Source: Okamejei kenojei (taxonomy: Eukaryota). Taken from it: a DNA stretch of 64,000 nucleotides. The position numbers and the translations under genes were made by a program. Below, one piece after another: positions 11,290 to 64,000 of this stretch. The notes under the pieces are model-generated. The model did not search any database. It had not been told where the DNA came from and saw only the letters and a list, made by a program, of their open reading frames with translations. Each line of letters opens with the position of its first letter. Position 1 is the first letter of the stretch. The stretch is from positions 62,001-126,000 of the forward strand of contig JAVHYY010000086.1 of assembly GCA_035221665.1 (NCBI GenBank). Reading direction: 5' to 3'.

Positions 11290-12197
11290 TCACTTTACCG
11301 ATTTAAATATCTTCCTAGTGCAACGGATCGGATATGTTAGCACACGGAACAACTCATCTCTGAACTTGCTCTGAGTCACAGTGTAAATGGCTGTGTTGGT
11401 GCAGGAGCTCAGCAGCTGAAGCATTGATCCAACCTTTTCCAACCCTACCATGGGGTTTGCCCAGGACCTGCGTATAAACAAACTCAAACTTCGAACAGCA
11501 ATAAAATGTGCGACACTTGTGGCCCAGAGCAGGATGAAGCAGCTCGAAATTGCCATAAGTAAAACGACCGATCGTCTGCGGTTCACCATCTCCTGATCTT
11601 TCTTTTTCTCCCCACCGCTGAGGTCTCGGAGGTTCCTGCGGACTCGACTGGCCACGAAAATGCGTCTGATGGTGAGGGCGTTAAACAACAAAATCACGCA
11701 GAATGGAATCACCGGGGTGAACAACTGATCGGTCCAAGAGAACACCATCCATTCGCGACGCATATAAAAATATACGTCTTTGACGCAGCCCAGATTCAGT
11801 TCAATTGGGATGTAAGAAACGTATGCGAAGGGCAAAGGTAGGTTCTGAAGGCAGATGCATGGGGTCATTGTCTAGATAACAATCGACGCGGTTCTCTCGG
11901 TGCAATATTTGACTTTCATATTCTGAGTAGAAATCGCAACAAAGCGATCAAATGTGAAAGCGACTGTGAACCATACAGAACAATCCACCGCCACGGGTGC
12001 CAGGAAGAGTATTATTTTGCACACATGAGTGTAGGGCAAGGAGTCGGGCCACCAATAAGTATCAGCAATCCGACGAAACATCACGTCAATGAGAAGCACA
12101 GAGAAGTCTGCGATTGCCATGGCTACCATGTAACGAGTGATGCACTTGGAGAGGCCGCACATGCCACGGGACAGGATTACAATCGCCATCAGATTCA
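11290..12197 (-). pseudogene. GPR139/GPR142-like class A GPCR, copy 1, exon 2 (one premature stop)
   Basis: Acceptor ttcccag|TGAAT at 12197. Translates VNLMAIVILSRGMCGLSKCITRYMVAMAIADF...FTFDRFVAI...SCTNTAIY. In-frame TAG at 11872-11874 where the paralogues have CTG; no frameshift elsewhere (908 nt, same length as the paralogues). Confidence 0.9.
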
Positions 12198-13549
12198 CTG
12201 GGAAGGGATGAAAAAAGAAATGATTAATTGTGTGTGGCATGGGTTGGTGGGTGAGGGTAATTTAAACGTGCGCATATTTGGGACGAAATGTTGCCTCTTT
12301 CCTTCGCTTGAAGAAGTATTCAGACCCGAAACGTTCCCTATTTCCTTCGCTCCATAGATGCTGCCTCACCCGCTGAGTTTCGCCAGCATTTTTGTCTGCA
12401 TTTCAGAACATTATGTTGAGCAATGGCATTCCGTGAGGCACTGCAATTATAATTACATACATACGACAGCGACAAACAAGCGTAACAATATAACGAGTAG
12501 TTTTTTGTGCTGAATAGCGGGCGGGCCTCCGTGCTATATCTGATAAGAACCATTGTTGAAGTATCTCACTGGCTCAAGTAGCATCTCTGGATTACATGGA
12601 AAGGCAACGTTTCAGCTCGGGTCGTTCCTTCAGTGTTCGATCGGAGGAAGGATCCCGACCCGATACGTCGCCTACGTCGGTCTTCCAGAGATGCTACAAG
12701 ACCCGCTGAGTTACCCCATACTTTGTTAACCCGGCATGATCGCTGCAGCTACAGTCTCTGTTATCTGTACTTCAAAAAATATTTCTTTAATTTTCCTCTC
12801 AAACGAGGGGGAACATATCTGACACTGTTTGTTGAGTAAGTTGTTCATACGATCATCAAATTTGTTTCTGCCAAATTATCCCTGTGAAATGTTAACAGCT
12901 TTACTGAAAATGCAGTATCAAATGACTGGACGGGGTGATTTTTTTTTCCTTTCTACCGCGTGCACTACGCACTGCGGAACAGGTAGTCTCACACACAGCG
13001 AGGAGGATGTGTCGCTTGCCCTACCAACAACACAGGTGCGGGGCATCGGTTGGGGCCAAAATGCGTGGAGTCTAAATTTGTACCAGAGTCTATGACCGGC
13101 CATCCGTCATCGAAGCCAGCGCGTTTCCTCTCTCCGAAGATGTAAATTGGTTCATTTCAGTATAGTTTAGAGGCACAGCACCGAAGCAAGTCCTCCGGTC
13201 CATCGAGTCTGCGCAGACGAGTGACCTACGCAGACCAACAATATTCCACACACACTAGCGACTTAAAACAAATATATACCAAATCAATTAGCCTACAAGC
13301 CTGTCAGTCTTGGAACGTTGGAGGAAATCGAAGATCTCGGAGAAACCCCACGCTGGCCACGAGGCGAACCTATAAATTCTGTAAAGACAAGTAACCGTAG
13401 TGGAGAGCGAGCCCTGCGCCCTCTACCGCTGCGCCTTCATGCAGCCCTTAACCGTGCCGGGTTATTCCGTATGTTCTCTTAATCTGTACTCCTCTGCGCT
13501 TTTCAATCTGTCTTTGTTAGTTCAATGACCTGTGCCGACAATTACCTAC

Positions 13550-13619
13550 CGGGTACACCAATTGCTGCAAGAATCGGGTAATACACAGATTCTATATCCA
13601 CGATCCCACTATAATACAT
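13550..13619 (-). pseudogene. GPCR copy 1, exon 1 (MYYSGIVDIESVYYPILAAIGVP)
   Basis: ATG at 13619, 70 nt, donor G|GTAGGT. The phase-1 join G|TG AAT restores the frame with exon 2 and completes TM1. Confidence 0.85.
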
Positions 13620-15470
13620 TTTAATTCGACGGTCTAGGCAATCACTCCTGGTGTTGCCACTCAGCGATTGTCAGCGAAACAAACCAATCTCTGGCACATT
13701 TATAAAGTAAATAAATCAGAAAATAGACAATTAAATAACAACCCGGTGGGCATTACTAACAGACTTGTGAACAAACAAGTACTTGTTTTCAATGTAATAT
13801 TGAGAAATCACAATCATGCGTGCGACCGCTCCATACTTTTCCAACAGCAGGCAGTGAAGCATGAATTAAAAACAATCCAAACTAACGCACGCGCAGTGAA
13901 GTTGCTCGCGATTGTACTGAGCAGCGATTTATTTCCTTGAACATTATATCCGATGACTTGACAAGGATAGTTGGAATTTCTGGCTTGTACCTGTACCTGT
14001 ACTTTAACCTGTGCAACTCGAGTTTCCAGACGGCGACAGCAGAGCGTTATGCAATATCGGCACCTGAGCATATCCACTGGGAACCTAGTGGCAGTTTTCT
14101 CAGAAAAGTGACTAATGGGGCGAAAGAGCAACAAAAGAGAGAAGAACCATCGACTTTATCAAGCATTAATAAAACACGAACATGTAAATTAATTATCGAG
14201 GCAGCGTGGTTTGTCGGCTTCGTCCCGGGGTTAGCAGCCAGAAGTCGGTAAGATTGATACGGACACGAGGGTTCATAAGGTCTTAAGGCTTCGGAGTAAA
14301 ATAAGGCCATTATTCCCATTAAGTCTCATCCCTCATTCAATCATGAATTATCTATACCCTCTCCTACACCACACTCTTACTGTCTGCTCATAACCACTGA
14401 GGCCTATACTAATGAATAATCTATCTATATCTACCTAGAAAATATCCACAGAATTAACCCCCACAGCCTTTGTGGCAAAGTATTCCACAGATTTAACATA
14501 AAGGACTATGAAGGCGTCAGATGAACAAAGGGGTCTATGAAGACATGAGAGAGGTGCTCATGCTATTCTGAAAATGACCCGTTCACAGCTGCTCTTTTCT
14601 TCCTGTCTGCCAACCAATTTTCTATCCATGTCAACACGCTAACACCAATACCAATATTGCCCGTTATTTGCTTCCAATATTGTATGTTGTCTATTGAACT
14701 GGCCAAGGTGAACTGGAAAGGGATCCGAACAGGAATGACGGTGGAAAAGAAATGGCTGGAATTTCTGGGCATAATCCGGAATACGCAGGATCATTTAATT
14801 CCAAAAAGGAAGAAAGATTATACGGGGTGTAGGAGGCAACCGTGGGTGACAAGAGAAGTTAGGGATAGAATAAAACTAAAACAAAATATGTATAACACAG
14901 TAAAGAGTAGCCGGAAGCCAGAGGATTGGGAAACTTTCATAACATAACAGAAGGAAACAAACCGGGCAATACGGGCCGAAACGATGAAGTACGAGGTGAA
15001 GCTGGACAGGAATAGAAGGACGGACAGTAAAAGCTTATTTAGATATGCTAAGCGAAAAGGAGTAGCAAAGTCAAATGCGGGTCCCTTGAAGGCAGACATG
15101 GGTGACATTATTATGCGTAATAAGAAATGAAGGAAGAGTTCAACACGTACTTCGGATCTGTCTCCGCTAAGGAAGACACAAACAACTTCCCAGATGTAGC
15201 GGAGGGCTGAGGATCTAAGGGTGTAGAGGTACTGAAATAAATTTTCATTCAGCGAGAAATCGTATTGTTTAGGCTAATGGGACTAAAGAATGAGAATCCC
15301 CTTGGCGTGATGGTCTGGATCCCAGGGTCCTCGGGCAGATGGCTCTGGAAATGGTGGACGCATTGGTGATCATTTTCCAATGTTCAATAGATTGAGAATC
15401 AGTTCGTGTGGATTGGAGTATAGCTAATGATATCCCACTTTTCAAAAATGGAGCGAGCGAGTAAACGTGG

Positions 15471-18400
15471 TATTTTACTTCGGAGTCACGTGAGTGACTA
15501 CGTGAATAGAAGCCCGTACAGCCGTTGGTGCGTCATGACGTCAGACGCTGGTGCAGTCGGGAACGGTTGGAGCAGCAGCGCTCCTCCGAGCGGTAAGTTT
15601 AAACAGGTTACACGAAAAGCTGGAGAATTCAGCGGGGGCAGCAGCATCTAAGGAGCGAAGGAGATGGGCGACGTTGCGGGTCGAGACCCTTCTTCAGACT
15701 TCACCCTCCATTCTCCAGCATCTGCAGTTTTCGTTAACAGGTTTAAACGGAGGTAAGGTTTGTTGAAATACTTTACCACAGGTCATTTTCTGCGACGGTT
15801 GGGAGTAGATATGTGGCAGAAAGTGAAGAAGGTGTCGGCGAGGCGCTCCGGGGGTAGAAAGGAGAGTGACCAGGAGAGTGTTGAGGATGGAGGCCCGTCT
15901 GGTACACCTGGTCCGGTGCTGGCTACACAGCCAGTGGTTGCGGACCCACTGCCGGGGGGCAGTAGAGGCTTGCACAGTAGGGTGGAAGGCCACTGGCAAG
16001 TCTCTGTGGCCCGTAGATGAGTCGGGCCTGGAGGTTATACCCTCCATAGGAGAGTCCGTTTGCTCACGGCTCTCCCAAGTCGAGATTCTATTACAAAAGA
16101 ATGCTCGACAGGGACCAGCTCCGTGAGGAGGAGTGGTGCCCAAGCCAGGCTGATGTAGAGCTTGTGCTAGCAGCACCTGTTTCAGGGCTGCAGAACTATC
16201 CTGCCTGTGAGGAGGATGTTCCAGCTCCTTGAGGAGGAGTGGTGCCCAAGCCAGGCTGATGGAGAGCTTGTGCTAGCAGCACCTGTTTCAGGGCTGCAGA
16301 ACTATCCTGCCTGTGAGGAGGATGTTCTATCAGGGCAGTTTGCTGACACTGTTTCTATGCTGGGGGAGAGCAGTAAATGTGTTCGATTGGAGGTAATTCC
16401 GAACATTGCTGGGAAGTTTGCTGAGTGTAGAGGCAGGAAAGGCGATTGATGTAGAATTGGCCGAAGCCATTCAGTATATGCTCTCCCACCAGTTACAGGA
16501 GCTAGCTATGGATGAAGTAGTAAAAAACTATAAAGCTCCTGTTAATTGTGATCTCCTGAAGGTACCGGTGGTTAATCACCAAATTTGCATAGATGGGTTT
16601 GCCTGCTGGGGCCCAGGAGATGAAGTTTTAAAAAAAGTGCTTAAACTGTTGTAAGCAGGTATTACAGCTGTGGTGAAAGTTATTGATGCAAATGATATGG
16701 TTGAAGCACACCAGGATGAACTGGGACTCCTTTGTAATGCATTTTGAAATGAATAATGTCGGGAGGGCCGCTATTAGGCCAGTGCTAACCCGAATTTGGC
16801 GAGTTGTGCAAACCGACTAGTGTACCACCACGAAATCTGTTGTTTGGTGGTAACCTTGCAAAAAGGGTCAAAGACTGTTATGAGGTTGTTATAACCATGG
16901 CCCTCATTAAGCCAGCTGGAAGCAAGGCGAAAAAGGTTATCTACAAGAAGTCGAGGACAACAAGGCCGCAAGGAAAGATGCTGGTAAGGAATATAACATT
17001 TGACAGACGATGAATTAACTGATGTTCCTGTTCAAATTGGGGAAGGTTAAAATTGTTCTCAAACAATGGCAGCAGTTGACATCAGATTTGTTCATACTTA
17101 GTGTATTGAAGGGGTGAAAAATTGGATTTTACTATGACAGTCTACCTAATCAACATTTTCCTAGTCGTAAACTTATTTTTCAGATGAGGAAAATGTGCTT
17201 ATTCAAGCAGAGATTCAGTCGTTACATAAGAAGGGGTAATTGAGCCTTCTGTCTATCAAAGTCAACAATTTCTGTCAAGTATATTTCCCAGATCTAAAAA
17301 GACTGGGGGATGTAGAATTATTCTGGATTTATCGAATTTGAACAAATTTGTTTGTTATAGGCATTTCAAAATGGAGAACTTTACCACGGGCAAACATCTA
17401 GTGTCCAAAGGGTATTATATGGCAACCATTGATTTAAAGAATGCGTATTACGCAGTGTCTATTCATGGTGATGATAGAAGATATTTGAAAGTTATTTGGA
17501 TGACTGAGCTGTGGCAATTCAGGACATTGCCGAATGGATTAACTTCAGCTCCTAGATTATTTACTAAATTGGTAAAACCTGTGTTAGCATTGCTTAGAGC
17601 TCAGGGGCATGTGGTAATGGCCTATTTAGATGATTTCTGATTGTTGGAAAGACTCACGCTGAAACTCAATCATCAGTTTCAGTTGTTAAAATCACTTTTG
17701 AACAAATGGGATTTGTTATTCACCCAGGTAAATCTAAATTATCACCAGTCCAAATTATTGATTATCTGGGATTTACCATTAATTCCAATCACATGTTGGT
17801 AACTTTGCCCAGGGATAAATTGAATCAGTTAATTGAGGACTGTGTTAATCTCGTTGGAGAACAACGGCCTTTGATTAGACAAGTAGCCAGTTTTATTGGG
17901 AAGTTGTTGCAGCCTTTCCGGCTGTGCAGTATTGTCCTCTGCATTATCAACAATTACAACCATCAAAGGAACAGGCACTGAGAATACAAAGGGGCTATTT
18001 TTGATAGGCCTATGCAGTTGTCAGCTGGGGCGATTGCTGACATACAATGGTGGATAGTACATGTTTCAAAAAATTTAAGGAAGGTTTCGTGGAATCAGCG
18101 TCACTGATATTACAGACTGATGTGAGTGCACTGGGTTGGGGTGCAACAGATATGTCTTCTAGTTGTGGAGGCAGATGGAATGTGGATGAGACATCGCTTC
18201 CTCAATTAAGAGGGATTGATTATTTAGAGTTGTTGGGCACCTGGTATGGGCTCAAAGCTTATTGTTCTACAAGGAGGTATCTGCATGTGCAGCTCAGATT
18301 CACAACACCACAGCAGTGGCATATGTAAACCACATGGGTGGAGTTAAGTCACAGTCTTGTGATAGACTGGCTAACCAGATTTGGAGCTGGTGTATTGACC

Positions 18401-23295: not shown

Positions 23296-23309
23296 TATTT
23301 TTTTTAAAT

Positions 23310-25977: not shown

Positions 25978-26885
25978 TCAATTTGCCGATTTAAATATCT
26001 TTCCAGTGCAACGGATCGGATATGTTAGCACGCGGAACAGCTCCTCTCTGAACTTGCTCTGTGTCACGATGTAAATGGCCGTGTTGGTGCAGGTGCTCAG
26101 CAGCTGAAGCATACATCCAACCCTTTCAAATTCTTCCAAAGGGTTTGTCCAGGCCTTGCGCGTAAACACTTTCAAACTTCGAACCGCAATAAAATGTACA
26201 ACACTTGTGGCCCAGAGCAGGATGAAGCAGCTCGAGATTGCCAGAAGTAAAACGACCGACCGTCTGCGGTTCACCATCTCCTGGTCTTTCTTTTTCTCCC
26301 CACCGCTGATGTGTCGGAGGTTCCTGCGGACCCGACTGGCCACGGAAATACGTCTGACAGTGAGCGCGTTAAACAACAAAATCAGGCAGAATGGAATGAC
26401 CGGGGTGAACAACTGTTCGCTCCAAGAGAACACCGTCCATTCGGGACGCGTATAAAAGTGTACAATTTTGAGGCAGCCGTGCTCTCCATCCATTCCTTGA
26501 TAAGAAACGTATGCGAAGGGCAAGGGAAGGTTTTTAAGAAAGACGAACAGGCTCACTGTCAGGATAACAATCCACGTGGTTCTCTCGGTGCAATATTTCG
26601 TTTTCACATTCTGAGTAGAAATCGCAACAAAGCGATCAAATGTGAAAGCGACTGTGAACCATACAGAACAATCCACCGCCACGGGAGCGAGGTACAATAT
26701 TATTTTGCACACAGGAGTGTAGGGCAAGGAAGCAGGCCACAAATAAATATCAGCAATCCGATGAAATATCACGTCAATGAGAAGCACAGAGAGGTCCGCG
26801 GTCGCCATGGCTAGCATGTAACGAGTGATGCACTTGGAGAGGCCGCATTTGCCACGGGACAGTATCACAATCGCCATCAGATTCA
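25978..26885 (-). CDS. GPR139/GPR142-like class A GPCR, copy 2, exon 2 (intact; 325 aa with exon 1)
   Basis: Open 908-nt exon after ttcccag, with seven hydrophobic segments when joined to exon 1. TM2 AMATADL, TM3 Cys and DRF, ECL2 Cys, TM7 CTNTAIY and helix 8 SKFR are present. Confidence 0.92.
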
Positions 26886-27926: not shown

Positions 27927-27996
27927 CGGGTACACCAATTGCTGCAAGAATCGGGTAATACACAGATTCTATATCCACGATCCCACTATAATACAT
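27927..27996 (-). CDS. GPCR copy 2, exon 1 (MYYSGIVDIESVYYPILAAIGVP)
   Basis: ATG at 27996, 70 nt, donor GTAGGT at 27926-27921, in phase with exon 2. Confidence 0.87.
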
Positions 27997-33342: not shown

Positions 33343-33645
33343 ACTGGAGCATCCAGGACTCGGTGGCACAGTCGGTCTCTGAAATGACATTGGAATAAAG
33401 ATGACATCGCATAGAATGCTCCTTGAGACGGCAGGGACAATCCTGAATGCTTATTATTCGTACAGATAGCGACGTGGGCAGCCGCATGCGATTGTGTTTC
33501 GGATTACGGCAAGGATACCAAAGAGAAATGGTGATCTCACTGACCGATTCTCTTCTATGTACATTAAGACAGCAAAGACCACCCAGTTAATGATCCGCGC
33601 GTCCGAGATTACCGACGCCGCCACGTATCTTTCTGCAATGGACTC
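33343..33645 (+). pseudogene. Decayed TCR alpha/delta-type V exon (V-A)
   Basis: After acceptor tgttag it reads QDSVAQSVSEMTLE, then IECS, YRxRRGQP and DRFSSMYIKTAKTTQLMIRASEITDAATYLSAMD (V-set D-x-A-x-Y-x-C motif with Cys lost). Several stops and frameshifts. Confidence 0.7.
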
Positions 33646-33684
33646 CACCTTGCTGAAGAAACACGGCGGACCTGCAAAAAAAAC
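33646..33684 (+). promoter_or_regulatory. Degenerate 23-RSS of V-A
   Basis: CACCTTG + 23 nt + AAAAAAAAC immediately after the V end. Confidence 0.55.
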
Positions 33685-39413: not shown

Positions 39414-39722
39414 GACAGGGCGCTGGGGAATCGGTGACTCAGAGCCAGCCTTTACTGAGACCGAGAAACGTGACTTGGTGAAACTAACCAGTACCTACAA
39501 TACTGCAGCATCCATCTATCATTTATATATGTATCGACAAATTGCCGAGGGAAATCTTGAGTTTATTGTGCTCATACGATCTTGGGACCAACGGGAAACA
39601 CTGGGAGACATATTAGAGAAACGGTTATCCACGGATCTCCAGAAAGCGACTTCAATTGTCAATTTAACTATTTGGGGTCTCCAGCTGACAGACTCTGCAG
39701 TGTATTACTGCGCCCTAAGTTC
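39414..39722 (+). pseudogene. TCR alpha/delta V pseudogene (V-B)
   Basis: Acceptor tttcacag, then GESVTQSQP, a frameshift, and LVKLTSTYNT..YHLYMYRQ..NLEFIVLI..VNLTIWGLQLTDSAVYYCALS. First Cys is Ser and the conserved Trp is Met. Confidence 0.88.
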
Positions 39723-39761
39723 GACAGTAATTGGAAGCAGTCTCTGCGCAGTGCAATAACC
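39723..39761 (+). promoter_or_regulatory. Degenerate 23-RSS of V-B
   Basis: GACAGTA + exactly 23 nt + GCAATAACC. The critical first C of the heptamer is mutated. Confidence 0.75.
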
Positions 39762-43391: not shown

Positions 43392-43699
43392 GGCAGGCCG
43401 CTGAGGATTCCGTCACTCAGAGCCAGTCTTCACTGTGACCAGGAAAAAGTGATTTGGTGAAACTAACCTGTACCTACAATACTACAGCATCCGCTTGTTG
43501 TTTATATTGGTACCGACAAATTGATGCGGAAAATCCTGAGATTATTGTGCTGATACAGTCCTTGGCCCAACAGGTACAACGAGGAGACATATTAGAGGAT
43601 CGATTCTATGCGGTCTCCAGACAGCACTTCAATTGTCCATTTAACTATTTCGGGTCCCCAGCTTACAGACTCTGCTGTGTATTACAGCGCCCTGAGTTC
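43392..43699 (+). pseudogene. TCR alpha/delta V pseudogene (V-C), paralogue of V-B
   Basis: Acceptor tttcacag, then EDSVTQSQSSL*, LVKLTCTYNTTASACCLYWYRQ, a frameshift, and VHLTISGPQLTDSAVYYSALS (second Cys lost). Confidence 0.88.
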
Positions 43700-43738
43700 C
43701 ACAATGATTGAAAGCAGTCTCTTCGCAGTGCAAACACT
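43700..43738 (+). promoter_or_regulatory. 23-RSS of V-C
   Basis: CACAATG + 23 nt + GCAAACACT. Confidence 0.78.
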
Positions 43739-49178: not shown

Positions 49179-50086
49179 TCACTTTACCAATTGTCCTATC
49201 TTTCCAGTGCAACGGGTCGCATATGTTAGCACATGGAGCAACTCATGTCTGAACTTGCTCTGGGTCACGGTGTAAATGGCTGTGTTGGTGCAGGAGCTCA
49301 GCAGCTGAAGCATAACTCCAATCCTTTCCAGTCCTTCGAAAGGGTTGATCCAGGCCTTGCGCATAAACAATTTCAAAATTCGAAACGCCATAAAATGTGC
49401 GACACTTGTGGCCCAGAGCAGGATGAAGCAGCTCGAGATTGCCAGAAGTAAAACGACCGACCGTCTGCGGTTCACCATCTCCTGGTCTTTCCTTTTCTCC
49501 CCACCGCTGAGGTCTCGGAGGTTCCTGCGGGCTCGACTAGCCAAGATAATACGTCTGATGGTCAACGCATTAAACGACACAATCAGGCAGAATGGAATCG
49601 CAGGGGTGAACAACTGTTCAGTCCAAGAGAACACCATCCATTTGGGCTTTATGTAAAAATATATTGTTTTGACGCAGCCCAGAGACATGTCAATTGGCCT
49701 ATAAGGAACGTATGCAAAGGGCAAAGGTACGTTCTGAAGGCAGACGAATGGGGTCACTGTCAGGATAACAATCGACGCAGTTCTCTCGGTGCAATATTTG
49801 GTTTTCATCTTCTGAGTGGAAATCGCAACAAAGCGATCAAATGTGAAAGCGACCGTGAACCATACAGAACAATCCACCGCAACTGGAGCCAGGAAGAGAA
49901 TTATTTTGCACACAGGAGTGTAGGGCAACGAAACATGCCACCAATACATATCAGCAATCCGACGAAACATCACGTCAATGAGAAGCACAGAGAGGTCCGC
50001 GGTCGCCATGGCTATCATGTAAATAGTGATGCACTTGGATAGGCCGCACTTGCCACGGAGCAAGATCACTATCGCTAACAGATTCA
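49179..50086 (-). CDS. GPR139/GPR142-like class A GPCR, copy 3, exon 2 (intact; 326 aa with exon 1)
   Basis: Acceptor ttttttcccag|TGAAT, then an open 908-nt exon with the same 7TM motifs as copies 1 and 2. The N-terminal extension in the ORF track (50087-50219) is intronic. Confidence 0.92.
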
Positions 50087-51698: not shown

Positions 51699-51771
51699 CA
51701 GGGATACCGATTGCTGCCAGAATCGGATAATACACAAGTCCTATTTTCTTCTCGATCTGAATCCCATGCAT
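51699..51771 (-). CDS. GPCR copy 3, exon 1 (MHGIQIEKKIGLVYYPILAAIGIP)
   Basis: ATG at 51771, 73 nt, donor GTAGGT at 51698-51693, phase 1; homologous to exon 1 of copies 1 and 2. Confidence 0.87.
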
Positions 51772-52074
51772 TTTAATGCGACGATCCAGGCGATCACTCC
51801 TGATGGAGCCGCTCAATAGTTGCAGCGAAACATACCAATATCTCGCATTCTTATAAACAAAATAAAGGAGAAATCCGGCAACGAGATTACATCCCTGTGG
51901 ACATTACTTACACACTTTTGAACAAACATCTACTGTTTCCATGTAAAATTCAAAATCACAATAATGTTGGCGACATTTCCAACAGCAGGCAGTGAACATT
52001 GGATTTTGCAAATGCCAAACTATCGCACCCGCAGTGGAATTGCCGGCGAGTGTTCTGAGATGGGGTTAATTTCC

Positions 52075-52415
52075 ATATAACCGTATAACCATATAACAAT
52101 TACAGCACGGAAACAGGGACTCTCGGCCCTTCCAGTCCGTGCCGACCATTTGTTTTCCCCTAGTCCCATCTACCTGCACTCAGACCATACCCCTCCATTC
52201 TCTTCACGTCCATATACCTATCCACTTTACTCTTAAATGTTAAAATCGATCCTGCCTCCACCACTTCTGCTGGAAGCTGATTCCACACAGCCACCACCCT
52301 CTGAGTAAAGAGGTTCCCCCTCACGTTACCCCGAAACCTCTGTCCTTTAATTCTCATGTCATGCCCTCTTGTTTGAAACTTCCCTACCCTCAATAGGAAA
52401 AACGTATCCACGTCA
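52075..52415 (-). mobile_element. CR1 family B 3' fragment upstream of GPCR copy 3
   Basis: 3' UTR and tail flanked by an AATTTCC TSD (52068-74, 52416-22); the site is empty in copies 1 and 2. Confidence 0.9.
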
Positions 52416-52634
52416 AATTTCCTTAAACATTACATCAGATGACGGGCTAAGGAAAGTTGTTCTTTCGAACTTGTACCTATTCAACTCGCATTTCCAAAGA
52501 ACAACAACAGGGAGAGAGGGCGACGCAGGACAGGAACGTCAGCATATCTGGTCACACAAGGTCGGATATCTCCGTAAAGTGGCACTTTGCTGGAAAGAGC
52601 AACAAAAGAGAGAACAGTAGAATTTAGCTCATAT

Positions 52635-53590
52635 GAAGGCGTCAAGAGAGTTTATTGTCATATGTCCCATATAGGACAATGAAATTCTTGAGTTGCATCA
52701 GCACAACGGAATATAATAGGCACGAATACAGAACATATCATATCAGTGAGTCCATATACCATTCTATAAATATAGACACACATTAATAAATAAGCAGATA
52801 AAGTGCAAATAAACAGCTAATGGTCTATAAGTGTTCACAGATTTGTTTCAGTTGCGTTTAATAGCCCGATGGATGTGGGGAAGCTGCTATTTCTGAACCT
52901 GGACGCTGCATTCGTCAGGCTCCTGTACTTTCTACCTGAAGGTAGCGGGGAGGTGAGTGTGTGGCCAGGATGGCATGGGTCCTTGATGATGCTGCCATCA
53001 TTTTTGTGTCAGTGACTACGATAAATCCCCTCGATGGTAGGGTGGTCAGAGCCGATGATGGACTGAGCAGTGTCTACCACTTTTTGTAGTTTTTTCCGCT
53101 CCTGGGCGCACAAGTTACAGAACCAAGCCACGATGCAACCGGTCAGCATGCTCTCTACTCCACACCTGTAGATGTTACAGAGAGTCCTCCTTGCATACCG
53201 ACTCTCCGTAATCTTATCAGGAAGTAGTCGCTGATGTGCTTTCTTAATAATAGCATCAGTGTTCTCGGATAAGGAGATATCTTCAGAAATGTGCACGCCC
53301 AGGAATGTGAAGCTCTTGGCCCATTCCACCATCGTCCCGTTTATCTAAACGGGACTAGGGGTCTCCATCATATCCCTTACAAAGTCCACAATCAGTTCCT
53401 TGGTTTTGCTGGTGTTGAGGGCCAGGTTATTGTGCTGGCACCATTTGGTCAGTCGGTCGACCTCACTTCTGTACTCTGACTCGTCCCCATCTGTGATACG
53501 TCCCACAACAGTGGTGTCGTCTGCGAACTAGATGATGGAATTCGAACTATATCCGGCTACGGAGCCAAGAGTACAGAGTGAGTACAGCAG
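52635..53590 (-). mobile_element. Rex1/Babar-type LINE 3' part
   Basis: FADDTTVVG and IIKKAHQRL..YRCGVESMLTGCIVAWF; same family as 34040-34850. Confidence 0.82.
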
Positions 53591-54869
53591 TAAAACAGTA
53601 ACATGTAAAATAATTATCGGGCAGGGTGGCTCATCGGCTCCCTCCCAGGGTGAACGGTCAGAGGTGGGAACGATTGTTATGGTCATTGGAATTTTCATGC
53701 CGCTTGATTGCTTTTCTCTAGAAGACGCTTCAGCGCCCAAGTTACCGCTTTTTCTGACTGGCATATCCCCGCTGTAAGCCGAAATCACGGCGCAGAAGTT
53801 ATATTTCCAAGCCAAACTCCGGCAGGCCGCGACATATCAACGGACTTCAGTAGCCGGATCCGCTTCCAAATAAGTAGTTGAGAAAATCTGAATCTACCAT
53901 AAGAGAGAAGGGCCTTTTTGGCAGAAATGCTGAGTGATTTGTTTGTTTAGTCTGTGGAGCATTAAATTCCACAGGCCAGATCTCTGGATAAGGCGCCCGC
54001 CATTTAAAACGAGTTGGCATTAATATATGCGATAATCTGCCCCAATGGCAAGTAGACGCCCTGTCATTAAATATTCAAGCAAGAGACGGATAGGTTTTGA
54101 GATGGGAATCATTACATTGAAGGGGAATACGACGTAATCTGATCACAATAAAATACAGAACAGTTTTGAGCAGTCGAGCGCCCGCGTCTTCCTCCTATTA
54201 TTAGGTTTTACAGTGGCAGGGACGAATAACACACATTGTTTCTTGTAGCGGTTGCTTTTTCTGAAACCTATTCCAGAAAAAAAACATTCCTTCACCGAAC
54301 GAATTAAAAAGGCAGCTCAGTGACAGCGCCCTCCGACCCTGCCGTCTGCCTGAAACTGCAATCTCCTTGTTCCACTACATGGGCCCCTTCATTCTGAGCA
54401 TTGTTATTCGGGGAGAATCGGCTCTCGGCCCAACTGTAATACCGCACTCTTGTTTCGTGCATATCACCTAGTAAGCAAGTAAATGTTATTTGTATAGCAC
54501 GTTTAAATCAACTCGCGTTGAATCCAACGTGCTTTCCATGGAAGAAATGAGTACGTTTCCGTACATCGATGGTACTAATTGTTCGTTTCTGTACATCACG
54601 TGGTACTAATTGTCCATTTTACCTATCCTTGCTCCCTCACCAAATAAATAAAAGAGGCATTCACTTTCCTGCATCTTTGGGGTGTTGCAATGGCGACCAG
54701 CAGCCATTCCTGAAAGAACTGCTCCCACCTTAAACCTATATCTTCTGACTCACGATTCCTAATCAACCTCCTGCGCTCCAAAGGAATACATTCATAACCT
54801 GCTCACCCCCTCCCTCGATCACAGGCCCTCGAGTTCTGTGAGTGCTCGAGTCCTCTGAACTTGATAGCA

Positions 54870-56032
54870 GTTCAGTGACGGCCACATGAGTGGCAGATGC
54901 TGTATAATGTGGATACATATGAGGTTGTCCACTTTCGTGGCAAGAACGAGAAAGGAGATTATTATCTGAATGGTGTCAGATTCGGAAAACGGGAGGTGCA
55001 ACGAGACCTGGGTGCCCTTGCTCATCAGTCACTGAAAGTATGCATGAAGGTACAGAAGTTAGTTAAAAGAAAGCTAATGGCATGTTGTCCTTCATTGCGA
55101 GAATATTTAAGTTGAGGAGCAAAGAGGTCCTACTGCTGTTGCACAAGTCCCCGGTGAAACCACAACTGGAACATGGTGTGCACTTTCGGTCTTCTAATTC
55201 TTGCTATAGAGGGAGTGAAATGCAGGTTTACCAGATTAATTTCCGGGATGCCGGAAAATAAATATCATGAAGCAATGGGGTGACTGGGCTTGTATTCACT
55301 GGAATTTAGGATGAGAGGGGGTCATATAGAAACATAACATTCTTAGCGCATTAGACGATACACAACAGGGAATAGGTACAGGAGTAGGCGAAACGGCCCT
55401 TCAAGCCAGCACCGCCATTTAATGTGATCAAACTGATCATTCACAATCAGTACCCCGTTCCTGCTTTCTCCCCATATTCCCTGACTTCGCTATCTCCAAG
55501 ATCCCGATCTAGCTCTCTTTTGAACGTTTCTAGAGAACCGGTCCCCACCGCCCTCTAAGGTAGACAATTCCACAGACACACAACTCTCTGTGTGAAAAAG
55601 TGTTTCCTCATCTCCGTTCTAAACGGCTTTCCCCGTATTCCTAAACTGTGCCCCTGGTTCTGGACTCCAAAAATATCGGGAAAATGTTTCCTGCCTCTAG
55701 CTTGTCCAAACACTTAATAATCGTAACTGTTTCCATAAAATCCCTTCTCATCCAACTAAATTCCAGAGTATACAAGCCAGGCCGCACAGTTCTCTCAGCA
55801 CGTGACAGTCCCGCCATCCCGGAAAATGAGCTTGTACTACGCTGCACTCCCTCAATAACAGGAATATTGGAGCGGCTAGATGCAGGACATTTCTTCTGGA
55901 TATTGAGGGAGTCCAGAAACCGGGCGTCACAGTCTACGAATAAGCGGTAGGCCATTTAGAAACAAAGAAACAGAACATTCGAATAAGGAGTAGACCATTC
56001 GGCCCTTCGAGACAGCACCGCAATTCAATATG
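54870..56032. mobile_element. Mixed-orientation decayed CR1 family A fragments
   Basis: YYLNGVRFGKREVQRDLG, RTRG and CR1 3' UTRs. Similar fragments lie at 35040-35730, 40850-41210, 46270-46775 and 47100-47540. Confidence 0.75.
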
Positions 56033-59000
56033 ATATAACCATATAACCATATAACAATTACAGCACGGAAACAGGCCCTCTCGGCCCTTCCAGTCCGTGC
56101 CGACCATTTGTTTTCCCCTAGTCCCATCTACCTGCACTCAGACCATACCCCTCCATTCCCTTCACGTCCATATACCTATCCACTTTACTTTTAAATGTTA
56201 AAATCGATCCTGCCTCCACCACCTCTGCTGGAAGCTCATTCCACACAGCCACCACCCTGAGTAAAGAAGTTCCCCCTCACGTTACCCCTAAACTTCTGTC
56301 CCTTAATTCTCATGTCATGCACTCTTGTTTGAATCTTCCCTACCCTCAATGGGAAAAGCTTATCCACGTCAACTCTGTCTATCCCTTTCATCATTTTAAA
56401 GACCTCAATCAAGTCCCCCCTTAACCTTCTGCGCTCCAAAGAATAAAGACCTAACTTGTTCAACCTTTCTCTGTAACATAGTTGCTGGAACCCTGGCAAC
56501 ATTCTAGTAAATCTCCTCTGTACCCTCTCTATTTTGTTGACATCCTTCCTATAACTAGGCGACCAAAATTGTACACCATACTCCAGAATTGGTCTTACCA
56601 ATGCCTTGTACAATTTTAACATTACTTCCCTACTCCTATATTCAATGCTCTGATTTATAAAGACCAGCACACCAAAGGCTTTCTTTACCACCCTATCTAC
56701 ATGCGATTCCACCTTCAGGGAACTATGCACAGTTATTCCTAGATCCCTCTGTTCCACAGCATTCCTCAATTCCCTACCATTTACCATGTACGTTCTATTT
56801 TGATTTGTCCTGCCAAGATGTAGCACTTCACACTTATCAGCATTAAACTCCATCTGCCATCTTTCAGCCCACTTTTCCAAATGGCCCAAATCTCTCTGTA
56901 GACTTTGAAAATCTACTTCATGATCCACAACACCACCTATCTTAGTATCATCTGCATACTTACTTATCCAATTTTCCACCCCATCATCCAGATCATTGAT
57001 GTACATGACAAACAACAGTGGACCCAACACAGATCCCTGAGGGACCCCACTAGTCACCGGCTTCCAACCTGACAAACAGCCATCCACCAATACTCTCTGA
57101 CATCTCCCATTCAGCCACTGTTGAATCCATCTTGCTACTCCGCCATTAACACCCAAAGATTGAACCTTCTTAACCAACCTTCCATGGGGAACCTTGTCAA
57201 AGGCCTTACTGAAATCTATATAGACAACATCCACTGCGTTACCCTCATCAATTTCCCTAGTTACCGCTTCAAAAAAATCAAGAAGGTTTGTCAAACATGA
57301 CCTTCCAGGCACCAATCCATGTTGACTGTTCCTGATCAGACCCTGTTTATCCAGATGCTTATATATATTATCTCTAAGTATCCTTTCCATTAATTTGCCC
57401 ACCACTGACGTCAAACTAATAGGTCTATAATTGCTAGGTTTATTCTTTGAACCCTTTTTAAACAATGGAACAACATGCGCAGTACGCCAATCCTCCGGCA
57501 CTATTCCCGTTTCTAATGACATTTGAAATATTTCTGTCATACCTCCTGCTATTTCTATACTAAATTCCCTCAATGTCCTAGGGAATATCCTGTCAGGACC
57601 TGGAGACTTATCCACTTTTATATTCTTCAAAAGTGTCAGTACTTCCTCCTCTTTGAATCTCATAGTTTCCATAGCTACTCTACTTTTTCCCCTTAACTCA
57701 CAGAGTTCAATATCCTTCTCCTTGGTGAATACCGAAGAAAGGAAATTGTTCAATATCTCCCCCATCTCTTTTGGCTCTGCAGATAGCTGTCCATTCTGGT
57801 TCTCTAATGGTCCAATTTTATCCCTCGTTATCCTTTTGCTATTAATATAGCTGTAGAAACCCTTTGGGTTTACTTTCACCTTTCTTGCCAAAGCAACCTC
57901 ATATCTTCTTTTAGCCTTCCTAATTTATTTCTTATGATTCTTTTTACATTCTTTATACTCCTCTAGCACCTCATTTACTCATTGCCTCCTATAATTATTG
58001 TAGATATCTCTCTTTTTTTCGAAACAACTGTCCAATTTCCCTTGAAAACCATGGCTCTTTCCAATTTTTACTATTTCCTTTCAACCTAACAGGGACATAA
58101 AGATTCTGTACTCTTACAATTTCCCCTTTAAATGTCCTCCATTTCTCTTCTACATCCTTCCCATGAAACAAAGTGTCCCAATTCACTACTTTAAAATCCT
58201 TACGCATTCCCTCAAAGTTAGCCTTTCTCCAATCAAAAATCTCCACCCTAGGTCCAGTTCTGACTCTCTCCATAATTATATTGAAACTAATGGTATTGTG
58301 ATCACTGGTCCCGAAGTGCTCACCAACGCATACCTCCGTCACCTGACCTGCCTCATTTCCTAACAGGAGGTCCAGCACTGCCCCTTCTCTGGTCGATACC
58401 TCTATGTACTGCTGCAAAAAAACTATCCTGCACTCATTTTACAAACTCCAAACCATCCATCCCATTTACAGAATGTGTTTCCCAGTCTATTTTTGGAAAA
58501 TTGAAATCTCCCACAATCACTACCTTGTGCTTACTACTAATATCTGCTATCTCCTTACATATTTGCTCTTCCAATTCACGCTCCCCATTTGGCGGTCTAT
58601 AATACACCCCTAAAAGTGTTGCTACACCGTTCCCACTTCTCAGTTCCACCCAAATAGCCTCCCTAGATGAGCCCTCTAATCTATCCTGCCAAAGCACTGC
58701 TGTAATATCTTCCCTGACAAGCAATGCAACACCTCCCCCTCTGGTCCCTCCAATTCTATCACACCTGAAGCAACGAAATCCTGGAATATTTAGTTTCCAA
58801 TTACAACCCTCCTGCAACCATGTTTCACTGATTGCCACAACATCATATTTACAGGTGTCAATCCAGGCTCTAAGTTCGTCCACCTTACTTACAATGCTCC
58901 TAGCATTAAAATATACACATTTGAGAAACCCACCATCCCTTATTCTCTGTCTATTATCTTTTTCATCTTTCTCGCCTATATTTTGGATACGAGTGCTTCC

Positions 59001-59267
59001 CTTCTCTGCCTCTTGCCCCACACCCTGACCACTAGCCCCCTCTACCCGAGTCCCTCCCCCCAGCCTTTCTAGTTTAAAGTCACCCCAGTAGCCTTTGCAA
59101 ATCTCCCTGCCAGGTTATTGGTCCCTCTCGGGCTCAAGTGCAACCCGTCCTTTGTGTACAGATCATGCCTTCCCCAAAAGAGGTCCCAGTGATCAAGAAA
59201 CTTGAATCCCTGCCCACTGCACCAGTCCCTCAGCCACGCATTTATCCTCCACCTCATTTCATTCCTA
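56033..59267 (-). mobile_element. CR1 LINE family B, 5'-truncated in ORF1
   Basis: 551-aa open RT ORF 56236-57891, endonuclease ORFs at 57995-59021, tail (ATATAACC)n on the + strand. Confidence 0.93.
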
Positions 59268-59373
59268 ATGAATGATCATCTGAAATTAGTACCCCGTCCT
59301 GTTTAATCCCCATACCCCTTGATTCGTTTAGCCCCAAGAGCTAAATCTAACTCTTTCTTGAAGTATAGGGGGG

Positions 59374-62100
59374 CAGTGATCACAATCCCATTAGTTTCAA
59401 TATAATTATGGAGAGAGTCAGAACTGGACCTATGGTGGAGATTATTGATTGGAGAAAGGCTAACTTTGAGGGAAAGCGTAAGGATTTTAAAGGAGTAAAC
59501 TGGGACACTTTGTTTCATGGGAAGGATGTAGAAGAGAAATGGAGGACATTTAAAGGGGAAATTGTAAGAGTACAGAAACTTTATGTCCCTGTTAGGTTGA
59601 AAGGAAATAGTAAAAATTGGAAAGAGCCATGGTTTTCAAGGGAAATTGGACACTTGTTTCGAAAAAAGAGAGATATCTATAATAATTATAGGAGGCATGG
59701 AGTAAATGAGGTGCTAGAGGAGTATAAAGAATGTAAAAAGAATCTTAAGAAAGAAATTAGGAAGGCTAAAAGAAGATATGAGGTTGTTTTGGCTAGAAAG
59801 GTGAAAGTGAACCCAAAGGGTTTCTACAGCTATATTAATAGCAAAAGGATAACGAGGGATAAAATTGGACCATTAGAGAACCAGAATGGTCAGCTATCTG
59901 CAGAGCCAAAAGAGATGGGGGCGATATTGAACAGTTTATTTTCTTCGGTATTCACCAAGGAGAAGGATATTGAACTCTGTGAGTTAAGGGGAAAAAGTAG
60001 GGTAGCTATGGAAACTATGAGATTCAAAGAGGAGGAAGTAACCATATAACCATATAACCATATAACAATTACAGCACGGAAACAGGCCCTCTCGGCCCTT
60101 CCAGACCGTGCCGACCATTTGCTTTCCCCTAGTCCCATCTACCTGCACTCAGACCATACCCCTCCATTCCCTTCACGTCCATATACCTATCCACTTTACT
60201 CTTAAATGTTAAAATCGATCCTGCCTCCACCACTTCTGCTGGAAGCTGATTCCACACAGCCACCACCCTCTGAGTAAAGAAGTTCCCCCTCACGTTACCC
60301 CGAAACCTCTGTCTCTTAATTCTCATGTCATGCCCTCTTGTTTGAATCTTCCCTACCCTCAATGGGAAAAACGTATCCACGTCAACTCTGTCTATCCCTT
60401 TCATCAATTTAAAGACCTCAATCAAGTCCCCCCTTAACCTTCTGCGCTCCAAAGAATAAAGACCTAACTTGTTCAACCTTTCTCTGTAACATAGTTGCTG
60501 GAACCCTGGCAACATTCTAGTAAATCTCCTCTGTACTCTCTCTATTTTGTTGACATCCTTCCTATAACTAGGCGACTAGTACTGACACTTTTGAAAAATA
60601 TAAAAGTGGATAAGTCTCCAGGTCCTGACAGGATATTCCCTAGGACATTGAGGGAAGTTAGTGTAGAAATAGCAGGAGCTATGAGAGAAATATTTCAAAT
60701 GTCATTAGAAACGGGAATAGTGCCGGAGGATTGGCGTACTGCGCATGTTGTTCCATTGTTTAAAAAGGGTTCAAAGAATAAACCTAGCAATTATAGACCT
60801 ATTAGTTTGTCGTCAGTGGTGGGCAAATTAATGGAAAGGATACTTAGAGATAATATATATAGGCATCTGGATAAACAGGGTCTGATCAGGAACAGTCAAC
60901 ATGGATTTGTGCCTGGAAGGTCATGTTTGACAAACCTTCTTGAATTTTTTGAAGCGGTAACTAGGGAAATTGATGAGGGTAAAGCAGTGGATGTTGTCTA
61001 TATGGATTTCAGTAAGGCCTTTGACAAGGTTCCCCATGGAAGGTTGGTTAAGAAGGTTCAATCTTTGGGTGTTAATGGCGGAGTAGCAAGATGGATTCAA
61101 CAGTGGGTGAATGGGAGATGTCAGAGAGTAATGGTGGATGGCTGTTTGTCAGGTTGGAAGCCGGTGACCAGTGGGGTGCCTCAGGGATCTGTGTTGGGTC
61201 CACTGTTGTTTGTCATGTACATCAATGATCTGGATGATGGGGTGGAAAATTGGATAAGTAAGTATGCAGATGATACTAAGATAGGTGGTGTTGTGGATAA
61301 TGAAGTAGTTTTCAAACTCTACAGAGAGATTTGGGCCATTTGGAAAAGCGGGCTGAAAGATGGCAGATGGAGTTTAATGCTGTTAAGTGTGAAGTGCTAC
61401 ATCTTGGCAGGACAAATCAAAATAGGAAGTACATGGTAAATGGTAGGGAATTGAGGAATGCTGTGGAACAGAGGGATCTAGGAATAACTGTGCATAGTTC
61501 CCTGAAGGTGGAATCGCATGTAGATAGGGTGGTAAATAAAGCCTTTGGTGTGCTGGCCTTTATAAATCAGATCATTGAATATAGGAGTCGGGAAGTAATG
61601 TCAAAATTGTACAAGGCATTGGTAAGACCAATTCTGGAGTAAGGTGTACAATTTTAGTCGCCTTGATATAGGAAGGATGTCAACAAAATAGAGAGAATAC
61701 AGAGGAGATTTACTAGAATGTTGCCAGGGTTCCAGCAATTATGTTTCAGAGAAAGGTTGAACAAGTTAGGTCTTTATTCTTTGGAGCGCAGAAGGTTAAG
61801 GGGGGACTTGATTGAGGTCTTTAAAAGGAGGAAAGGGCTAGACAGAGTTGACGTGGATACGTTTGTCCCATTGAGGGTGGTGGCTGTGTGGAATGAGCTT
61901 CCATCAGAAGTGGTGGAGGCAGGATCGATTTTACCATTTAAGACTAAAGTGGATAGGTAGATGGACGTGAAGGGAATGGAGGGGTATGGTCTGAGTGCAG
62001 GTAGATGGGACTAGGGGGAATCAAATGGTCGGCACGGACTGGACGGGCCGAGAGGGCCTGTTTCCGTACTGTAATTGTTATATGGTTATATGGTTATATG
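59374..62100 (+). mobile_element. CR1 LINE family B, 5'-truncated, interrupted at 60040/60578
   Basis: ORFs 59408-60049 and 60495-61439 are colinear with the other B copies; GTATA TSD at 59363-67 and 62101-05. Confidence 0.92.
60041..60577 (-). mobile_element. CR1 family B 3' fragment inserted antisense into another family B copy
   Basis: Tail at 60041; AGTA duplicated at 60037-40 and 60578-81. Confidence 0.9.
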
Positions 62101-62642
62101 GTATACATTGAATTCTTCTTCACTGTCTTCTGTGGCAGAGAACCCCACAGATTCACAACTCTCTGGGTGAGGAAGTTTTTCCTCATGAGGTAGATAGTAT
62201 TGCAGGCTGCTCGCGAGTTATGTTAGGATGGTTAAGTTCCTGATAACTGCAGGGAATAAACTGTCCCTAAATCTGGAAGTGTGAGTTTGCACACTTCAAT
62301 ATCTTCTGCCTGATTGTAGCGGGGACTTTGCCTTCACCCTATCTACTACCCCCAAATATTCAGTTGCCTGAATGGTTCAAATGTTCTACTGAACGTCAGA
62401 AAAACGCGAGAGCCCATCAGATGCTTCACATCAGATGCCAGGCCACCAAACAAATCATCAGATTTAACAATCCCCGTCTCAAATTCTCCCTCTCGTCGCA
62501 CATCGATTTTCATATATTCCCAGAAAACCGCCGGCACTGGGAAAGGCCAGCTGCGGTTCCGGCTCATTCTCCTGGACAGGGGCAGGATCTGTCGGGGGAC
62601 CTGGGCTCGTCACGTAAACCATTTTTTACCGGACAACGCGCG

Positions 62643-62683
62643 ATGGGAATCCTCCTGTTTTTGTACTGTCCTTCTGCTTAGCC
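62643..62683 (+). pseudogene. Leader exon of the NAR-type V (frame disrupted)
   Basis: ATG GGA ATC CTC CTG TTT...TGCTTAGCC|GTGAGT: hydrophobic signal-like exon with a strong donor 150 nt upstream of the V acceptor. As written it contains an in-frame TAG. Confidence 0.7.
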
Positions 62684-62833: not shown

Positions 62834-63114
62834 ACACTTCCGCCAACCAGTGACCCAGAGCCCGAATGCGGTGACTGGAAAAGAGTCCAAACTGTCACAA
62901 TCACCTGGCTTTCCCAAGAAGGATCCTGGAATTTGATGCAGGACATTTATTGAAGCAAGCACAATCCTGTGCTCATTGGCCGCGGATTACAACAGGTGCA
63001 CGGGTAATTGTGTCGACCAATAAAGCGAAAAAGACCATTACGTTGAAAATTCTTGGTTTGATAGTTGAGGACATGGCCACATATTACTGTCAAGCTGAGT
63101 ACAGGTGGATTAAG
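62834..63114 (+). pseudogene. NAR-type (NAR-TCR/IgNAR-like) V exon, pseudogene
   Basis: Acceptor tctacag, then PVTQSPNAVTGKE / QTVTITW / DIY / KQAQSCAHWPRITTGARVIVSTNKAKKTITLKILGLIVEDMATYYCQAEY. Only about 16-17 residues lie between the C-strand Trp position and the D-strand Arg, versus 30 in V-B, so CDR2 is absent. At least two frameshifts; first Cys is Trp. Confidence 0.75.
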
Positions 63115-63201
63115 CACAGTGATGGGCCTGCGGTTCCAGCAGGCCAATCAATACAAAATTAAGCACAGTGATGGGCCTACGGTTCCAGCAATACAAAAAT
63201 C
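63115..63201 (+). promoter_or_regulatory. Tandemly duplicated V RSS
   Basis: CACAGTG(63115-21) + 31 nt + ACAAAATTA, then CACAGTG(63164-70) + 22 nt + ACAAAAATC(63193-201). Confidence 0.85.
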
Positions 63202-63562
63202 CTGAAGGCAAATTCAAGAAGCAACATGGGTCAATCCTCCGGTGAACCCATGGACCCGCTTCAGCCCGCCTGCCCTGTCTTCTAGGTTGCACCGGATGAA
63301 ATGAGTACGATTCAAACAATGGGTTTTCTCTATTTGGCCAGTGCGGCTGGATAATGCTCCCTTTACCGAAAATGGTGTAAAAGAAATGTCATCGAGAATG
63401 TTTGTCCACTCTCTGATGCACAACTACAGACGAGGTCCAGTTACAGAAACTGCAATCTGAAAAATTATTTCGTTGAATGCTTTCTCCTGCCCGCCCATCT
63501 CCCCGGGCGCCTGGGGATTTAAAGCGACGCGAAACAACGTGAAAGTGAAGTGAAACAACGTG

Positions 63563-63605
63563 CGGGAATTGGATATCCACAGTGGAGCAGAGTCGAATAA
63601 AAACT
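63563..63605 (+). other. D gene segment (CGGGAATTGGATATC) with 3' 12-RSS
   Basis: A 15-nt G-rich core is followed by CACAGTG(63578-84) + 12 nt + ATAAAAACT, and preceded by the heptamer-like CAACGTG (63556-62). Confidence 0.72.
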
Positions 63606-63913
63606 CACCCCATTCAACATATATGTTCTTGAGTTCGGAACCAAAATCCAACGATTGTTGTTCCTGACGCTGTAATCCAGCCAAGTTGCACAAGGATGGC
63701 CACATTCAGTAAACATTACTTAATAATTGGTTCTGCGTTTGTCAAAGCACACCATTCTACGTGGGGCATCATTCTGCTCATAGCTCTGTTTCTTGGCGGG
63801 AACCGGTTGACCAAGCGAGGATTGGGCAGCAAGGACAGTTGCTACCTGGTGTGAAACTCCTGGAATAATTGGACAGCGATACTTATGGTTGCCAGGGAAA
63901 TCGAGGTGAGGAC

Positions 63914-64000
63914 TCTTTTTGTACTGCGAGCATCGAGAGACGGGGCACTGTGGCTTCATGGGACACTTACTATCAGGAGGGGATGGCGACTACGGTGACT
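63914..64000 (+). other. 23-RSS and J gene segment (truncated by window end)
   Basis: TCTTTTTGT(63914-22) + 23 nt + CACTGTG(63946-52), then WDTYYQEGMATTVT. This is a G-strand-like J without the canonical F/W-G-x-G, resembling NAR-type J segments. Confidence 0.78.

Follow-up and report, generated by a model that had tools for sequence, protein, structure and literature searches.

Orphan class-A receptor genes interleaved with T-cell receptor alpha/delta-type V segments in the skate Okamejei kenojei

Introduction

Genes with no immune function can lie within antigen-receptor loci, which raises the question of whether such genes are passive neighbors of the rearranging segments or are tied to them in duplication, regulation or somatic deletion. 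This question is posed by a stretch of 64,000 nucleotides from the skate Okamejei kenojei (assembly GCA_035221665.1, contig JAVHYY010000086.1, positions 62,001 to 126,000), referred to here, at its full length, as the window. It contains three genes for G protein-coupled receptors (GPCRs; G1, G2 and G3), three alpha/delta-type T-cell receptor (TCR) variable (V) segments (V-A, V-B and V-C) and a NAR-type cassette made of leader, V, diversity (D) and joining (J) elements. The window demonstrates co-residence of these genes, not coupling, and we consider it probable that the GPCRs are passive residents of a duplication-prone batoid TCR alpha/delta V region that includes a NAR-TCR module.

The presence of non-immune genes in antigen-receptor loci, which an earlier note on this DNA took as established, is borne out by the olfactory receptor (OR) genes found among the TCR alpha V (TRAV) segments of human and mouse. 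In human, the interval from TRAV1-1 to TRAV1-2 contains OR10G2, and that from TRAV1-2 to TRAV2 contains OR4E2; in mouse, Olfr1507-1509 lie between TRAV1 and TRAV2, and the arrangement is conserved in sheep (PMC4574546). GPCRs among TRAV segments are therefore already known in mammals, and what is new here is that the GPCRs within a TCR V array are of another family, one with many more members. The TCR alpha/delta region and the NARTCR V segments are covered by a 2025 map of antigen-receptor loci in elasmobranchs, which leaves GPCRs unmentioned (PMC12227049), and a search of the literature returned no account of an elasmobranch GPR139-like family, of its gene locations, or of GPCRs in shark TCR loci.

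Organization of the Window

The order of the elements is G1(-), G2(-), V-A(+), V-B(+), V-C(+), G3(-) and NAR-type leader-V-D-J(+), in vertebrate DNA that is rich in repeats and has a GC content of 38-48% (Table 1). When the longest GPCR open reading frame (ORF), that of G3, was used in a tblastn search, exactly three copies were detected in the window, all on the minus strand (approximately 11293-12246, 25996-26943 and 49182-50219). The interleaving, the antisense orientation of the GPCRs, and the order and strands given in the earlier note thus held in full on re-analysis. G3 and the NAR-type leader stand head-to-head with 10.9 kb between them, mostly occupied by long interspersed element (LINE) sequence, and G2 and V-A are likewise head-to-head with transposon sequence in between. 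The anatomy of the window is real and somewhat richer than first described, as each of the three GPCR copies also has a first exon of 70-73 nt carrying the ATG, which had been overlooked.

Table 1. Features located in the window. Positions are counted from its first nucleotide; RSS, recombination signal sequence; TM, transmembrane helix; UTR, untranslated region; APE and RT, endonuclease and reverse transcriptase domains; a slash in a splice site marks the exon boundary.
Feature	Position	Strand	Remarks
G1 exon 2	11290..12197	-	TM1 end to stop codon; 908 nt; in-frame TAG at 11872-11874
G1 exon 1	13550..13619	-	ATG; MYYSGIVDIESVYYPILAAIGVP plus 1 nt; donor G/GTAGGTAA
G1 conserved 5' flank	13620..13960	-	contains TTTATAAA motif; putative promoter/5' UTR
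G2 exon 2	25978..26885	-	open; 7tm_1 E 2.8e-17
G2 exon 1	27927..27996	-	69 compared coding nt same as G1 exon 1
V-A	33366..33684	+	heavily decayed TCR alpha/delta-type V pseudogene; 23-RSS CACCTTG-23-AAAAAAAAC
V-B	39425..39761	+	TCR alpha/delta-type V pseudogene; dead RSS GACAGTA-23-GCAATAACC
V-C	43403..43738	+	tandem V-B paralogue, pseudogene; RSS CACAATG-23-GCAAACACT
G3 exon 2	49179..50086	-	open; 7tm_1 E 3.3e-15
G3 exon 1	51699..51771	-	MHGIQIEKKIGLVYYPILAAIGIP plus 1 nt
G3 conserved 5' flank	51772..52074	-	G1/G2 homology stops at LINE block start
Nested young LINE fragments and other repeats	52073..62102		APE plus RT; occupy the greater part of the 10.9-kb interval from G3 exon 1 to the NAR-type leader
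NAR-type leader exon	62643..62683	+	frameshift giving in-frame TAG; donor GTGAGT next
NAR-type V exon and tandemly duplicated RSS	62834..63201	+	pseudogene; nonamer of second RSS copy ACAAAAATC
NAR-type D	63535..63605	+	core CGGGAATTGGATATC (63563-63577); 3' RSS CACAGTG-12-ATAAAAACT
NAR-type J	63914..64000	+	RSS TCTTTTTGT-23-CACTGTG; coding from 63953 (ASWDTYYQEGMATTVT...); cut by window end

The V Segments and the NAR-Type Cassette

The identity of the locus is supported by V-B, which among solved structures comes nearest to V domains of TCR alpha (E 4.5e-12) and next to those of delta, together with a NAR-type V-D-J that obeys the 12/23 rule. V-B matches the Pfam V-set domain with E 1.8e-5 and 25.4 bits, just below the 26-bit cut-off; a protein search with its ORF gave no usable match. 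Similarity to TCR V domains is weaker in V-A and V-C, and the framework region 3 (FR3) piece of V-A matches TCR alpha chains only, weakly (E ~0.02). The V exon of V-A has no DNA similarity to V-B or V-C in a sensitive blastn comparison and hence represents a different V family.

The earlier note had described all four V segments, including the NAR-type one, as dead, and each indeed combines stops and/or frameshifts with the loss of a canonical residue. The V exon of V-A (33366-33646) has several stops and frameshifts, and Cys104 is changed to Ser. That of V-B (39425-39723) begins GESVTQSQ..., carries a frameshift in FR1, and has Cys23 replaced by Ser and Trp41 by Met, the motif YYCALSS being kept, and its RSS heptamer has lost the CAC. 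In V-C (43403-43700) there is an in-frame stop in FR1, a frameshift in FR3 and a change of Cys104 to Ser (YYSALSS). Similarity to TCR alpha/delta V-set domains is thus present without the open frame and the full set of Cys23, Trp41 and Cys104 of a working segment and, in V-B, without a functional 23-RSS.

The NAR-type V-D-J that had been reported was recovered with its leader, V, D and J elements and their RSSs. The lesions of its V exon (62834-63114) comprise one stop and two or more frameshifts, and the position of Cys23 is taken by a Trp. The two Cys positions are about 61 codons apart, vs 73 in V-B, a spacing that fits a V segment without the complementarity-determining region 2 (CDR2), and the FR3 piece matches immunoglobulin heavy-chain V (VH) and VNAR chains (E 1e-11 to 4e-6), so that the segment is short, lacks CDR2 and has an immunoglobulin/VNAR-like FR3 as in NAR-TCR. 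The RSS spacers are of 23 nt after V, of 12 nt on the 3' side of D and of 23 nt before J. At the V segment the RSS is doubled (TTAAG-CACAGTG-...-ACAAAA twice, 63115-63201); the first heptamer, at 63115, is followed by a 31-nt spacer with about 8 extra nt, and the second, at 63164, by one of 22/23 nt. The 5' RSS of D is degenerate (CAACGTG) and ambiguous, owing to an internal duplication in which GAAACAACGTG occurs twice, 21 nt apart (63535-63577), and a nonamer-like GGATTTAAA lies either 11 or 32 nt from the CAACGTG heptamer.

The elasmobranch map (PMC12227049), with reference to its ref. 28, describes NAR-TCR as a TCR delta of sharks that rearranges doubly. The cassette resembles it in having a leader and a short V with immunoglobulin/VNAR-like FR3, and its own D and J, amid TCR alpha/delta V segments, and differs in that the copy in the window is a pseudogene. 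A complete NAR-TCR module also includes, a short way downstream, a leaderless supporting V-delta to which the NAR J is spliced; in this case it would fall beyond the window, as this ends inside J.

These lesions bear on an alternative in which the window would be a degenerating duplicate situated apart from the working TCR alpha/delta V array, and rearrangement would never cross the GPCRs. Lesions are present in all four V segments, and in the NAR-type cassette they affect leader, V and J; moreover, the transposon load of the window is heavy and recent. However, V arrays ordinarily contain many pseudogenes, and we regard this alternative as unlikely.

An Elasmobranch Family of Class-A Receptors

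The three GPCR copies match the Pfam 7tm_1 domain (E 3e-15 to 3e-17), the AlphaFold model consists of seven helices plus helix 8 (pLDDT 70.7), and all top Foldseek matches are class-A receptors, that is, the genes encode a class-A (rhodopsin-type) seven-transmembrane (7TM) domain. In these searches and in the fold, exon 1 and exon 2 were treated separately, and the V of the split codon was prefixed for residue numbering only. The best matches, with 76-78% identity, come from the skates Leucoraja erinacea and Amblyraja radiata and bear the NCBI name "probable G-protein coupled receptor 139". The best 120 protein matches are all from elasmobranchs and are spread over many contigs; 98 representatives are found at E<=1e-30 in a library clustered at 50% identity, and beyond this set there is a sharp fall to generic class-A receptors of 24-30% identity. 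Compared with the elasmobranch "probable GPR139" proteins, the window genes show 46-78% full-length identity and the same N-terminal exon sequence; nothing essential sets them apart, and by identity and by nesting in the clade they are members of this expansion.

A quick maximum-likelihood tree showed lineage-specific expansions, in which G1 to G3 and four skate proteins form a seven-row clade (SH-aLRT 100). G1 is sister to the skate proteins P0003 and P0004 (SH-aLRT 82) and not to G2 or G3; therefore, some of the duplications are older than the split from those skates.

The label "GPR139/142-like" used in the earlier note has to be reduced to that of a nearest neighbor. Human GPR139 (7VUG, 9M42) is the nearest solved sequence to the window genes, with which it shares the common class-A 7TM fold and a best-matching stretch in TM1-TM3. 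Orthology to GPR139 was considered and rejected, since the phmmer score is just 28 bits (E 1.1e-5), barely above the 25 bits of 5-HT2B, and since the window genes differ from human GPR139 in carrying DRF instead of DRY and, where NPxxY is expected, NTAIY. Other, unnamed GPCRs outscore human GPR139 with about 71 bits. In Foldseek it ranks 33rd, after many peptide receptors, from which the structural comparison does not distinguish it. Relatives of about 30% identity that carry the same NCBI name come from salamanders, from the coelacanth, and from one teleost and one nemertean (P0229, P0235 and P0247 are the "GPR139"-named proteins of salamanders, coelacanth and teleost), and on the strength of these similarities the elasmobranch expansion may go back to an orphan receptor that is ancient in vertebrates and separate from true GPR139. 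A scan of ten long GPCR gene models for fused V-set domains detected them in none of the ten; one of the models contains a hemopexin domain.

Gene Structure and Selection

Annotated skate proteins of the family start with M(Y/H)Y...YYPILAxIGxPVNLMAIV, whereas the window sequence that precedes VNL is a translated pyrimidine tract. By using the annotated N-termini as queries, a short upstream exon was found for every copy in the window. The exon encodes the stretch from the ATG to YYPILAAIG(V/I)P and is closed by a donor in phase 1, G/GTAGGTAA; the acceptor reads (C/T)TTCCCAG/TGAATCTG, and the split codon restores ...P-V-N-L... as in the annotated skate proteins. The two coding exons, split within TM1 (...YYPxLAxxGxP/VNLxAIV...) at a GT/AG, phase-1 junction, are thus a feature of all three copies, with introns of 1352 nt (G1), 1041 nt (G2) and 1612 nt (G3).

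The assertion that two of the GPCRs are intact and the third has one lesion proved accurate: G2 and G3 are open across both exons, and in G1 a lone TAG stands at the place of the CTG of G2 and G3, with no indel and with an exon 2 of the same length as theirs. G1 looks like a recent casualty. Its exon 1 product matches the N-terminus of the Amblyraja protein P0004 in 22 of 23 residues, and its exon 1 is identical to that of G2 at 69/69 nt (13551-13619 vs 27928-27996), compared with about 87% in the flanks and 87% in exon 2. This identity could be due, to judge from the alignment, either to local gene conversion or to a very strong constraint on the N-terminus. In the intron of G3, a repeat (51450-51637) reached a summed contig depth of about 490,000 in a DNA run vs about 100-300 for its neighbors; it is probably a tRNA-derived short interspersed element (SINE), because the loose ends read GGATCGAACCCGGGTCTC.

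Exon 2 has diverged by 13-15% among the copies, with a pairwise dS of 0.22-0.25 and dN/dS of 0.51-0.53. Over this divergence the 906 codon-aligned nt of each copy have accumulated zero gaps and one stop in total among the three, whereas between their introns, which are 58-75% identical, each pair differs by 8-16 gap events. In a simple simulation, 131 random substitutions left the frame free of stops with a chance of about 0.01. When mapped on the AlphaFold model, variable and replacement sites concentrate in the half that faces the outside of the cell (odds ratio 2.6-2.9, p ~9e-5). Upstream of the ATG, a block of about 340 bp that holds the TTTATAAA motif is 87% identical between G1 and G2 and 75% between G1 and G3, exceeding the introns (75% and 67%, respectively). 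We argue from the dN/dS values, the gapless exon 2, the replacements patterned by topology and the conserved upstream block for the window GPCRs as real, selected and functional receptor genes with diversifying ligand pockets.

The same data make it quite improbable that the copies are recently dead or were never expressed, their open frames being inherited from a functional parent elsewhere. The stop in G1 and a dN/dS of 0.5 would be compatible with that explanation, as would the lack of transcripts in three small runs of uncertain type; across 49100-51900, the reads of these and of one DNA run contained no splice joint, a negative that does not amount to absence of expression. However, copies of this kind would hardly have reached such divergence in exon 2 with no indel and one stop while their introns gathered gaps, nor would their replacements be patterned by membrane topology, and the grouping of G1 with P0003/P0004 instead of G2/G3 indicates that the duplications are old.

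Repeat Units and Their Bearing on Coupling

Self-comparison of the window resolved GPCR-only repeat units of approximately 3-5 kb (11113-15475, 25949-29686 and 47818-52074). The first matches the second, running on into a shared transposon (20230-21688 / 29685-31151), and the third is similar to G1 in both its body and its flanks. V segments alone form another tandem unit (~2.5-3.7 kb), separate from these, which comprises the V-B block (37655-40144) and the V-C block (41371-44120), which are 74-76% identical. Neither a V remnant upstream of G1 nor a second NAR copy was detected by sensitive DNA comparison within the window. The proposal that the receptors co-duplicate with V segments is therefore unsupported within the window, where GPCR and V units are separate.

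This separation is also relevant to functional coupling, the "receptor array coupled to a rearranging locus" of the earlier note, according to which divergent promoters or chromatin opening would be common to the GPCRs and the V/NAR cassettes, with expression of the GPCRs in developing lymphocytes and their clonal deletion or regulation by V(D)J recombination. Such coupling would suit the antisense orientation maintained throughout, the two head-to-head placements, G3 facing the NAR-type leader and G2 facing V-A (in both cases across DNA that is mostly recognizable transposon), and the conserved 340-bp block upstream of the GPCRs. However, that block belongs to the GPCR unit only and stops before any V, no repeat unit joins a GPCR with a V segment, no splice joint appeared over 49100-51900 in the runs mentioned above, and the neighboring V segments are dead while the GPCRs are intact, which indicates that their fates are uncoupled; in addition, the OR/TRAV neighbors of mammals exemplify co-residence with no need for coupling. 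Regulatory coupling of the GPCRs to the V(D)J locus has no support so far, and we judge functional coupling very improbable. Extremely improbable, in our opinion, is its extension to a large chemoreceptor-type repertoire, one subclade of which would have been drawn into the TCR alpha/delta V array in sharks and rays alike, would share divergent promoters and chromatin opening with the V and NAR cassettes and would be deleted clone by clone by V(D)J recombination; if true, it would constitute a non-immune receptor array with somatically mosaic copy number and expression in lymphocytes.

Several other repeats are found in the window. The young LINE family of the G3-NAR interval is also present at 6012-9250; its copies are 94-97% identical, nested and in both orientations, with a 551-aa open RT frame at 56236-57891, and the family may have been active recently. 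Two repeat-derived ORFs, 34159-34659 (+) and 53009-53332 (-), share about 80% DNA identity, and the former matches Pfam ALKBH8_N (E 1.8e-11); the pair probably represents the tail domain of a transposon and not a gene of the host. A GA-type purine-rich low-complexity array of about 470 bp (31160-31630) between G2 and V-A yields long artificial ORFs on both strands, and an assembly gap of 129 N (812-940) lies within a (GT/CA)n-like microsatellite.

Probable Passive Co-Residence in a TCR Alpha/Delta V Region

In the reading that we consider probable, passive co-residence, the window would be a stretch of a TCR alpha/delta V region, and lodged in it would be one local subclade of the two-exon, class-A orphan GPCRs that occur throughout elasmobranchs. 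The GPCRs would have multiplied locally by tandem duplication in units of 3-5 kb, independently of the V units, and the two families would have become interleaved because both turn over by birth-and-death in the same duplication-prone, repeat-rich region. Their products most probably work as 7TM receptors of the ordinary kind, diversified in the ligand pocket and conserved on the surfaces that face the G protein; the genes are presumably expressed, and their residence in the locus would be passive. As a by-product, deletional joining of a V segment located further upstream to D/J would delete the GPCRs in T-cell clones. Such clonal loss in T cells is expected but unproven: it would follow logically from deletional V(D)J joining and requires functional upstream V segments and downstream D, J and constant (C) segments, which would be located outside the window.

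A number of observations weigh against passive co-residence. All four V segments in the window are dead, so that the stretch might fall outside a working locus; a dN/dS of 0.5 denotes moderate constraint only; and, in the three small runs of uncertain type, reads fell only on the extremely abundant intron repeat and on 40 nt of conserved sequence. Repeat units that exceed the window in size could also link GPCRs to V segments. The head-to-head pairs G3/NAR-type leader and G2/V-A are suggestive and leave room for shared regulation, a hint that is tempered by the conserved upstream block being part of the GPCR unit alone.

Comparison With Mammals and Significance

The arrangement in the skate resembles the mammalian one in that class-A GPCR genes belonging to a multigene family are situated between V segments of TCR alpha and, as in mammals, would be lost upon the joining of a more 5' V (PMC4574546). 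It differs in the GPCR family involved, no OR being among the solved-structure matches to the window genes, and in extent, since mammals have two or three OR genes, confined to the 5' edge, and the skate window contains three in 40 kb. Unlike in the mammalian case, the window genes have two exons and are consistently antisense to the V segments.

Should the interleaving be conserved across elasmobranchs, it would represent a second, independent and much larger case of GPCRs in a TCR alpha V array after the mammalian ORs, and would provide a natural test of V arrays as duplication "nurseries" and of whether the somatic deletion of passenger genes matters. Elasmobranchs are reported to have very few canonical olfactory receptors (PMC11979771), and a family of at least 100 selected orphan receptors is notable in this context.

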